A stretch of DNA of 63,904 nt, counting the filler, from Octopus bimaculoides (Eukaryota): assembly GCF_001194135.2 (NCBI RefSeq). It is 6 parts of 6 records of this genome, joined end to end, with 100 filler letters (N's around TTAATTAATTAA, not from the genome) between each part and the next. Parts side by side here need not be neighbours in the genome. Positions count along the whole stretch, not along the records: positions 1 to 17,994 come from NC_068989.1; 5 more parts are not named here. One strand, written 5' to 3'. Made by a program: the position numbers and the translations under genes. Below are positions 15,010-17,664 of the stretch, piece by piece. Numbering within the stretch: the first letter of the stretch is position 1; every line of letters starts with the position of its first letter. The notes below the pieces were generated by a model. That model ran no database searches, was not told where the DNA came from, and saw nothing but the letters and a program-made list of their open reading frames with translations.

Positions 15010-16168
15010 GTTGGTGATGACATTACCTAATTCACTTTTTGTACCGTAGCAGCAGGTGAAGGCGCATGGCTTAGTGGTTAGGACTAACGATCGTAAGGCT
15101 CTGAGTTCAATTCCCAGCGATGCAATTGTGTCCTTGAGCGAAACACTTTATAACACGTTGCTCCAGTCTACTCATCGAGCAAAAGTTAATTGTACCTGTA
15201 TTTCAAAAGGCCAGCCTTATCACACTCTGTGTCACACAGAATCTCTCTTGAGAACTACGTCTGTGGAGTGCTCAGCCACTTGCACGTTAATTTCACGAGC
15301 AGGCTGTTCCATCGATCGGATCGACTGGAACTCTTGTCATCATAACTGACGGAGCACCAGTTAAGTCACCAAATCAGCAACATGCAGCATATAAATTAAT
15401 GTCAGTGCTGTTTATCTTACTAAACCTAAACCAACATTTTCCTCCTCTTCTTTTTTCTTTCTCTTCTTCTTCCTCTTCTTCCTTCTCCTCTTTGTCCCCT
15501 GTTTCATTCTCGTTATTTTCCAGTCTGTGGAACCAAAGTTATTTTTTTATGGGAATCTTTGTGATTTTCGTCACTGTTTATACTATTATCTTTAAAAACT
15601 TTTTAATGTATCATAGAGATGCAATTTTTGATGCTGAATCCGAATTTTTAATTCATTTATTGCAAAAAAAGTTTGCAAAAATGTTACAGGTGTTCAAAAT
15701 TTGATAATTTCAAGAATTTTCAGCCAATCAGAAAACAGCACATTCGCTGCCTCTTCCATCATCGGGGAGAGGGGAGGCACCGGCATGTCAAAACATTAAA
15801 TTAGCTATGCAAATAAATTTAATATTTAAAGCTATGAACAAACCAACCAACAGGAGTTGCTAAAAATAACAGTCAAAACATTAAAACATAAACAAGCAAA
15901 GTTAATATTTAAAAACTATGAACAAGCCAACAAGACATTATTTACATTTGACAGATATGATGGTCCTACAAAAGATGGCCCTACAAAAGATGAAAGTCAA
16001 TTTGACCCGCATCCTTTTCTGTCATCAATCGATAACTGATTTATATTCATCATCGTCGTTGTAATATCATAAATGTCATAAATGTCAGTGTTGTTTATCA
16101 AACTAAACCTAAACCGACCTTTCTAATCCTCTACTGCCTCTCTCTCTCTCTCTCTTCCTCATCCATAG

Positions 16169-16250
16169 GTTTACCATGTAACTGTCAGTCTCATTACTTC
16201 CCAGTCTGTGGAATAAATGGCAGAACCTACCCAAACAGATGTTTGGCATT
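16169..16250 (+). CDS. RECK: RECK exon, Kazal domain 1 first half
   Basis: ccatag|GT...CATT|gtaagt; 82 nt, phase 1 to 2. GLPCNCQSHYFPVCGINGRTYPNRCLAL resembles GLPCNCADQFVPVCGQNGRTYPSACIAR. Confidence 0.93.
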
Positions 16251-16692
16251 GTAAGTACCAATATTTTACTGCTTAACCTCTTCCTCACTCTCTNNNNNNN
16301 NNNNNNNNNNNNNNNNNNNNNNNNNNNNNNNNNNNNNNNNNNNNNNNNNNNNNNNNNNNNNNNNNNNNNNNNNNNNNNNNNNNNNNNNNNNNNNNNNNNN
16401 NNNNNNNNNNNNNNNNNNNNNNNNNNNNNNNNNNNNNNNNNNNNNNNNNNNNNNNNNNNNCTCTCTCTTTTCCCATCTCTTTCTCACTTATTTTGCCTTT
16501 GTCCCTTTCTCTTAGTTTCTCAAATTTCCTCTCTCTCCTCTTTCTGCCTATCTGTCTGTCTGTCTGTCTGTCTGTCTGTCTGTCTGTCTGTCTGTCTGTC
16601 TGTCTGTCTCTCTCTCTCTCTCTCTCTCTCTCTCTCTCTCTCTCTCACACACACACACACACAATTTGTCATACAACCACACAACCAACATC

Positions 16693-16858
16693 CAAGGCCA
16701 GCTCAAGATACCAGCAACTTGGGCAGCTGCCTGGGGCACCATGTGCTAGGGGGCACCAAAGAGGGGGTGACAAAGACAAGGAAATTTCTACGACCGTCAC
16801 CTTGTACACTCCAAAGTTCAGCTTGCCCGGGGCGACAGCAACCCTAGGGACGGCCCTG
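16693..16858. mobile_element. hAT-like MITE remnant
   Basis: Right end CCCTAGGGACGGCCCTG (reverse complement CAGGGCCGTCCCTAGGG); degenerate left end CAAGGCCAGCTCAAG. Confidence 0.4.
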
Positions 16859-17270
16859 TATGTATGTATGTATGTATGTATGTATGTACGTACTTATATA
16901 TGTGTATTTATGTATGTATATGTATGTGTATGTATGCATATATATACAAATGTATATACATATGTATGTACAAATGTATGTACATATGTATGTACATACA
17001 TATGTACATATGAGCATGTAGATATATGTGTATTTATGCATGTGTGTGTGTGTATGTATATATGTATGTGCATATGCAGTTATTTATTATCGCATTCAGA
17101 TATAAAAGACCCCCGCATGATATCCTCTGTGGATTATCCCATACATTTCTTGATATCCAATCACTATGAAAAGATATCCAAAACTAAAATCCAAAAGCAA
17201 CTGATACAAACTCCATTAATTCTTCTTCAGTTTTCCATTTGTCTTGTAATTCTTTTCTTCTGTTCTTCAG

Positions 17271-17360
17271 ATGTGCAGGACTCAAAGAGATCCAATTTAG
17301 GTTTGGTAACTGTACTGCAATCAATCCCTGCAAGAACGCAAACTGTGGTTCAGACGAGAC
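17271..17360 (+). CDS. RECK: RECK exon, Kazal domain 1 second half; last RECK exon found
   Basis: ttcttcag|A...GAC|gtaagt; 90 nt, phase 2 to 2. CAGLKEIQFRFGNCTAINPCKNANCGSDET resembles CVGLQDHQFEFGSCMSKDPCNPNPC. Confidence 0.92.
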
Positions 17361-17401
17361 GTAAGTCTTTTACGAATTTTCTGATATATTTTGTTCTATA
17401 T

Positions 17402-17664
17402 TACCATATTTGATGGCATACAAGATGTGCCATTTAGAATTGAAAAAATCTATCTCAAAAAAGCACCCTGGGCCCTGCATCGATTGATGACAGAAAAGGA
17501 TGCGGGTCAAATTGACTTTCATCTTTTGTAGGGCCATCTTTTGTAGGACCATCATATCTGTCATATTAGATTTTTTTTTTTTTTGCTTTTCCTCGGAATT
17601 TGAGCTGCTGAGATTGGGGTGTATCATGTATACCCAAGTACCCTTAATGCCATCAAAAACGGTA
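17402..17664. mobile_element. Tc1/pogo-like MITE carrying one arm of the 85 bp inverted repeat
   Basis: Termini TACCATATTTGATGGCATA and TTAATGCCATCAAAAACGGTA are inverted repeats. Confidence 0.6.

Follow-up and report, generated by a model that had tools for sequence, protein, structure and literature searches.

RESULTS

The DNA analyzed here is a stretch of 63,904 nucleotides, filler included, from the Octopus bimaculoides genome (RefSeq assembly GCF_001194135.2), in which six parts of six records are joined; the results below concern its first part (positions 1 to 17,994, from NC_068989.1), to which we refer as the 18-kb window. The plus strand of the 18-kb window carries a RECK gene. Upstream open stretches on this strand gave Pfam matches above the cut-offs to CC4_RECK, FZ_RECK (in two pieces), and EGF1_RECK, in the canonical RECK order. 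A further plus-strand exon at 14893 to 15009, ending in phase 1, partially matches the fibronectin-type-I-like module (FnI_RECK); the match stayed below the cut-off, and the exon is colinear with the solved RECK chain 8tzp_C. Two exons of 82 nt (16169 to 16250, plus strand) and 90 nt (17271 to 17360, plus strand) encode the first (LPCNCQSHYFPVCGINGRTYPNRCLA-) and the second half (-CAGLKEIQFRFGNCTAINPCKNANCGSDE) of Kazal motif 1, respectively, as judged by translation, Pfam Kazal_2, alignment to 8tzp_C, and splice-site strings. The acceptor of the 82-nt exon consists of a CT-rich tract followed by AG, the acceptor of the 90-nt exon reads TTCAG, and both donors read GTAAGT.

Together with the exon at 14893 to 15009, both Kazal exons translate into one open peptide, in which Kazal_2 matched above its curated cut-off (E = 1e-7) at residues 41 to 80, across the exon join. 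The Kazal motif in the joined exons is complete, with six cysteines, and the alignment to residues 628 to 682 of 8tzp_C is gapless at the join. The RECK peptide aligned colinearly with 8tzp_C over 138 residues (E = 2e-24; TYTGLPCNCQSHYFPVCGINGRTYPNRCLALCAGLKEIQFRFGNC versus TFTGLPCNCADQFVPVCGQNGRTYPSACIARCVGLQDHQFEFGSC). No homologue of a 95-residue RECK peptide was found in a large protein collection, in which close relatives are absent. A previous reading of this DNA (the sequence-only reading) had proposed that the two RECK Kazal-1 exons, with a total length of 172 nt, are bracketed by an inverted repeat and that their skipping would shift the frame from phase 1 to phase 2. Kazal_2 and the 8tzp_C alignment bear out the identity of the exons, and their lengths (82 + 90 nt) add up as proposed. 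Given the phase-1 end of the upstream exon and a combined length (172 nt) not divisible by three, loss of both Kazal exons does shift the frame as described; the exon at 14893 to 15009 would be the donor exon in such a skip.

A decayed tandem duplicate of the first Kazal exon region was noticed at 15395 to 15532. It is 78 to 87% identical to 16078 to 16213, at an offset of about 683 nt, and covers the intron's final 90 nt along with the 5' half of the Kazal exon. The duplicate retains HSRYFPVCG, has no AG acceptor at the corresponding place, and diverges thereafter; it probably represents a dead pseudo-exon.

The repeat itself consists of a left arm at 15949 to 16033 (plus strand), located in the intron at 15010 to 16168 before the first Kazal exon, and a right arm at 17479 to 17563 (plus strand) in the intron that follows the second Kazal exon and runs off the edge of the piece. 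Direct comparison revealed that the arms are reverse complements of each other at 85 of 85 bases, i.e., two copies in opposite orientation, just as the sequence-only reading had stated. The distances given there were also correct: 135 nt separate the left arm from the acceptor at 16169, and the right arm follows the donor at 17360 after 118 nt. The 1,445 positions between the arms comprise 1,278 read bases and 167 N. Within the left arm, we found a 15-nt tandem pair (15959 to 15988), a 7-nt inverted repeat (TGACAGA/TCTGTCA), and a terminal palindrome (ATCGAT). The two arms contain 28 and 23 adenosines.

Complementarity of the arms breaks off sharply at both ends. In BLAST, the match grew to 88 bases, one of them mismatched (15946 to 16033 versus 17479 to 17566), and a repeat search reported 110 nt at 90% identity, a figure which includes 25 weakly matching outer bases. 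When the flanks were compared by gapped local alignment, the observed score was reached by 364 of 500 shuffles for the outer flanks and by 106 of 500 for the inner flanks. With flank alignments at shuffle level, the arms do not form the center of an older inverted repeat of greater length. A chance origin of the match is excluded as well, since the number of 85-base matches expected by chance in 18 kb is near 1e-43 (∼1.6e8 position pairs × 4^-85). No third copy sharing any 14-mer with the arm was present in the 18-kb window, and when the arm was aligned locally, at high sensitivity, to the remainder of the 18-kb window, the score was at shuffle level. The arm pair is a genuine feature of a common and known kind.

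We also considered if the left arm could be ancestral local sequence shared with the duplicate at 15395 to 15532. This was rejected, because homology between the duplicates breaks off ∼45 nt downstream of the arm, without extending into it, and the best upstream alignment is at shuffle level. Directly upstream of the left arm lies a tandem duplication (15787 to 15847 and 15872 to 15931; 81% identical) with a period of 85 nt. Although this period equals the arm length, the tandem units share no sequence with the arm, and the agreement may be a coincidence.

Between the arms, the assembly contains a gap of 167 N (16294 to 16460), as had been noted before, which is located within a CT microsatellite in the intron between the Kazal exons. 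Since both of its edges are CT-rich on the same strand, the gap corresponds to a CT microsatellite that was left unresolved in the assembly. The continuous Kazal motif and the gapless alignment to 8tzp_C indicate that the contigs on either side are ordered and oriented correctly, that the frame is unbroken, and that no exon is hidden in between; the gap is thus purely intronic. In practical terms, the RECK gene model across the gap is sound. Owing to the gap, the real distance between the arms is an estimate only. Four more gaps are present in the 18-kb window (3651 to 3744, 4542 to 5146, 8109 to 8355, and 10149 to 10388). Like that at 16294 to 16460, each of them abuts a microsatellite (CT, TA, or CA/TG) on at least one side, which identifies the five contig breaks as unresolved simple repeats of a short-read-style assembly.

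In such a gap-rich scaffold, one of the arms could be unreal and have arisen during short-read assembly or gap closing. An artifact of this kind would yield perfect identity, the arms are located on two different contigs with a gap between them, and the short-read-style assembly has five gaps within 18 kb, all of which abut microsatellites. However, neither arm sits at a contig edge: 260 nt separate the left arm from the gap, and for the right arm the distances are about 1 kb to the gap and 430 nt to where the piece ends. Moreover, contig order and orientation are confirmed independently by the continuous Kazal motif, and the usual error of assemblers is to collapse repeats, not to generate inverted copies. 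We therefore regard an assembly artifact as rather improbable.

The sequence-only reading had further placed the right arm inside a miniature inverted-repeat element (MITE), while it had found no MITE ends around the left arm. The putative MITE (17402 to 17664, no strand assigned) is framed only by an 18-nt inverted repeat (17402 to 17419 and 17647 to 17664) that matches at 16 of 18 positions. After shuffling of the same 340 bases, terminal repeats of this quality appeared in 17 of 200 cases, i.e., the frame is at chance level. No convincing target-site duplication accompanied it (there was only TAT/TAT in AT-rich sequence), and BLAST retrieved no second copy of the 17402 to 17664 frame in the 18-kb window. 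The MITE was therefore rejected, and this part of the earlier account has to be dropped. For the left arm the previous observation was right: no frame of terminal inverted repeats surrounds it. Target-site duplications were absent from either arm as well as from the outer ends of the pair.

Searches of sequence collections were negative too. Exact scans with substrings of the arm found neither a 24-mer nor a 28-mer in metagenome contigs, a collection unlikely to hold animal genomes; the 24-mer was also absent from prokaryotic genome contigs and the 28-mer from viral contigs, where animal genomes are not expected. None of the open-frame translations of the 85-mer matched a protein, and four open reading frames of the 18-kb window, two of them over the right arm, were absent from the contig index. 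At a permissive threshold, Rfam reported no RNA family at the arms.

Two perfect inverted ends at a spacing typical of a nonautonomous element could also suggest a single DNA transposon of 1.6 kb, with the arms as its terminal inverted repeats. The interior of this candidate, however, consists of two RECK exons that fit the upstream exons in order, orientation, and frame and are colinear with vertebrate RECK. In addition, its outer ends lack a target-site duplication (ATTATTTACATT on one side versus TATTAGATTTTT on the other). The in-frame RECK exon content and the missing duplication refute a single DNA transposon with 85-bp ends, which we consider hardly conceivable.

Complementary pairs are commonplace in the RECK introns, as seven other inverted pairs of 45 to 185 nt were found there. 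Those listed are SINE-like and fall into the 75 to 90% identity class: 1310 to 1493/8613 to 8786, 9497 to 9662/12897 to 13052, 1432 to 1493/14516 to 14576, 8763 to 8807/11182 to 11226, 1725 to 1843/12857 to 12975, and 1850 to 1959/12845 to 12956. Direct SINE-like pairs of the same class were found at 2074 to 2234/12488 to 12649 and 8612 to 8699/14515 to 14613. The dispersed repeats around 2095 to 2250 and 14520 to 14600 appear to resemble octopus SINEs. Several of the SINE-like inverted pairs span other RECK exons, so that many weaker competing pairings would be available in the pre-mRNA. The arm pair is set apart from these repeats only by being perfect, short-range, and near splice sites.

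By eye, the segment at 15045 to 15130 looks like the head of a tRNA-derived SINE (ggcttagtggttagg ... gttcaattccc); neither ARAGORN nor Rfam detected a tRNA there. Matches to mir-297, mir-466, and similar Rfam microRNA families were seen at 100 to 440, 3950 to 4140, 4400 to 4540, 6460 to 6670, 7990 to 8110, 8810 to 9030, 10390 to 10760, 16860 to 17100, and 17660 to 17730. All were located on TA/TG/CA microsatellites and scored far below the gathering scores. We rejected microRNA genes at these positions and consider the matches to be composition artifacts.

While the other dispersed repeats in the 18-kb window are 75 to 90% identical, the arm pair alone is ∼100% identical, which makes it by far the youngest of them. 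We infer that the pair is an evolutionarily very young inverted duplication and most likely a local inverted copy. A local copy made by template switching fits best with the perfect identity, the sharp and identical boundaries, the spacing of 1.4 kb, and the lack of target-site duplications: one arm would have been copied from the other through a template switch during repair or replication. Recent templated capture of local sequence, as proposed in the sequence-only reading, thus still stands as the best guess of origin. Either arm may have been the source, and not necessarily the right one, as assumed there. Alternatively, both arms would stem from a very young short repeat whose insertion leaves no target duplication.

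A related but distinct explanation assumes that one short dispersed family (a miniature element or part of one) inserted twice, independently and very recently, in opposite orientation into neighboring introns, comparable to inverted Alu pairs in human genes. It draws support from the abundance of dispersed SINE-like repeats in the 18-kb window, including the seven other inverted pairs in the RECK introns, and from the anatomy of the arm, as tandem and short inverted repeats like its 15-nt and 7-nt motifs are often found near transposon ends. Against it, neither arm has a target-site duplication, and the perfect identity and shared boundaries of both copies contrast with the 75 to 90% identity of the other repeats. 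A third copy is absent within 18 kb, and the collections scanned contained no match, although they are not expected to hold this genome. Finally, the MITE frame at the right arm is at chance level. We therefore consider independent insertions unlikely.

The arm-arm RNA duplex had a predicted energy of −158.9 kcal/mol, compared with −16 and −22 kcal/mol for the single arms folded alone. In the minimum-energy fold of 15900 to 17620 (gap removed), all 85 left-arm bases were paired with their right-arm partners. No comparable inverted repeat was found inside the flank of either arm, the downstream intron being covered up to the piece edge. Both arms lie in one pre-mRNA, in which they could pair as a perfect 85-bp helix and loop out about 1.3 to 1.45 kb that include both exons.

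With regard to back-splicing, the arms occupy the transcribed strand, one in the intron before the two exons and the other in the intron after them, as in known back-splicing pairs. In human cells, flanking complementarity of 30 to 40 nt suffices for exon circularization (PMC4201285), and the predicted 85 bp exceed this length and, in the fold of 15900 to 17620, win over the local alternatives. Stronger hairpins sometimes inhibit circularization, and many exons with flanking complementary repeats never circularize (PMC4201285, PMC4617980). Since stronger hairpins can be inhibitory (PMC4201285), the perfect 85-bp helix in RECK guarantees no circle. Consensus splice sites at both Kazal exons favor normal linear splicing. 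Circular RNA levels in octopus are reportedly low, which agrees with repression by ADAR (PMC9699675), and no mention of a RECK circular RNA was found in the papers searched.

With regard to editing, the predicted helix within one pre-mRNA corresponds to the long, near-perfect intramolecular double-stranded RNA (dsRNA) on which ADAR acts. Across animals, A-to-I editing primarily targets dsRNA of young, little-diverged inverted repeats (PMC9989829), and for this reason we rank hyper-editing as the likeliest consequence. In order of likelihood, promiscuous ADAR A-to-I hyper-editing of the intronic arms, with no coding effect, would come first. Second would be low-level back-splicing, in which 17360 is joined to 16169 in a circle of 172 nt, and/or the skipping of both exons, in which case the frameshifted transcript would be expected to be degraded. 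Mechanistically, both the 172-nt circle and the exon skip are possible. The circle, skip, and ADAR effects suggested in the sequence-only reading appear legitimate in this respect, as they follow from established knowledge.

We also weighed whether the duplex might be a selected regulatory device, maintained for a functional circular RECK RNA or for an editing-tunable skip of the Kazal exons that switches RECK off. The arms are only 135 and 118 nt from the splice sites and form the strongest predicted pairing of the region, and a frameshifting skip could serve as an off-switch. Perfect identity, however, points to a recent origin and not to long maintenance; the 172-nt circle has no evident function, and the silence of the papers searched on circular RECK RNA and the low circular RNA levels reported for octopus argue in the same direction. 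The arm pair shows no sign of such a device, and we regard it as very improbable.

DISCUSSION

On balance, and with moderate confidence, we favor the view that the exons for RECK Kazal motif 1 are flanked by a young 85-bp inverted duplication that arose by template switching or from a young repeat, and for which editing would be a likelier consequence than a circle or a skip. There is at most a slight chance that it constitutes a lineage-specific new duplex through which the Kazal-1 exons circularize or drop out to an extent set by ADAR editing in a high-ADAR animal. Should a circle, a skip, or dense editing be found in RNA, the locus would provide a clean natural test case. Since the arms are short, perfect, not transposon-derived, and located 118 to 135 nt from consensus splice sites, they would suit the question of duplex strength versus ADAR outside vertebrates and flies. 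Without such an effect on RNA, the pair would be one more intronic complementary pair, of a class that is common and mostly inconsequential.

The arrangement can be compared to several known systems. In Drosophila laccase2, also an invertebrate gene, complementary DNAREP1_DM sequences are located in the two introns that immediately adjoin the circularizing exon; the splice sites are brought close to each other when the introns pair, and sister species show no conservation of the pair (PMC4617980). The laccase2 arms are recognizable transposon copies of 106 to 272 nt with 69 to 75% identity (PMC4617980), whereas the RECK arms are 85 nt long, perfect, without transposon assignment, and flank two exons. 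Furthermore, circularization of laccase2 was proven experimentally with compensatory mutations (PMC4617980), while any RECK circle is putative.

Inverted Alu pairs of human ZKSCAN1 and HIPK3 similarly provide reverse-complementary matches in flanking introns, of which 30 to 40 nt are enough, and in ZKSCAN1, as would be the case in RECK, two exons are circularized (PMC4201285). In contrast to the RECK arms, Alu pairs are imperfect and come from a family with roughly a million members (PMC4201285). The dsRNAs that are hyper-edited by ADAR resemble the RECK pair in that little-diverged inverted copies form a long intramolecular duplex within one transcript (PMC9989829). Typical ADAR substrates are annotated repeats (PMC9989829), whereas the RECK arms, a candidate substrate, could be assigned to no family.

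The repeats of mouse Sry (cited in PMC4201285) differ from the RECK arms in being far longer, with at least 400 complementary nt needed there (PMC4201285). They are nevertheless similar in kind: a near-perfect inverted duplication around an exon that did not originate from dispersed repeats, and which in Sry promotes circularization (cited in PMC4201285).
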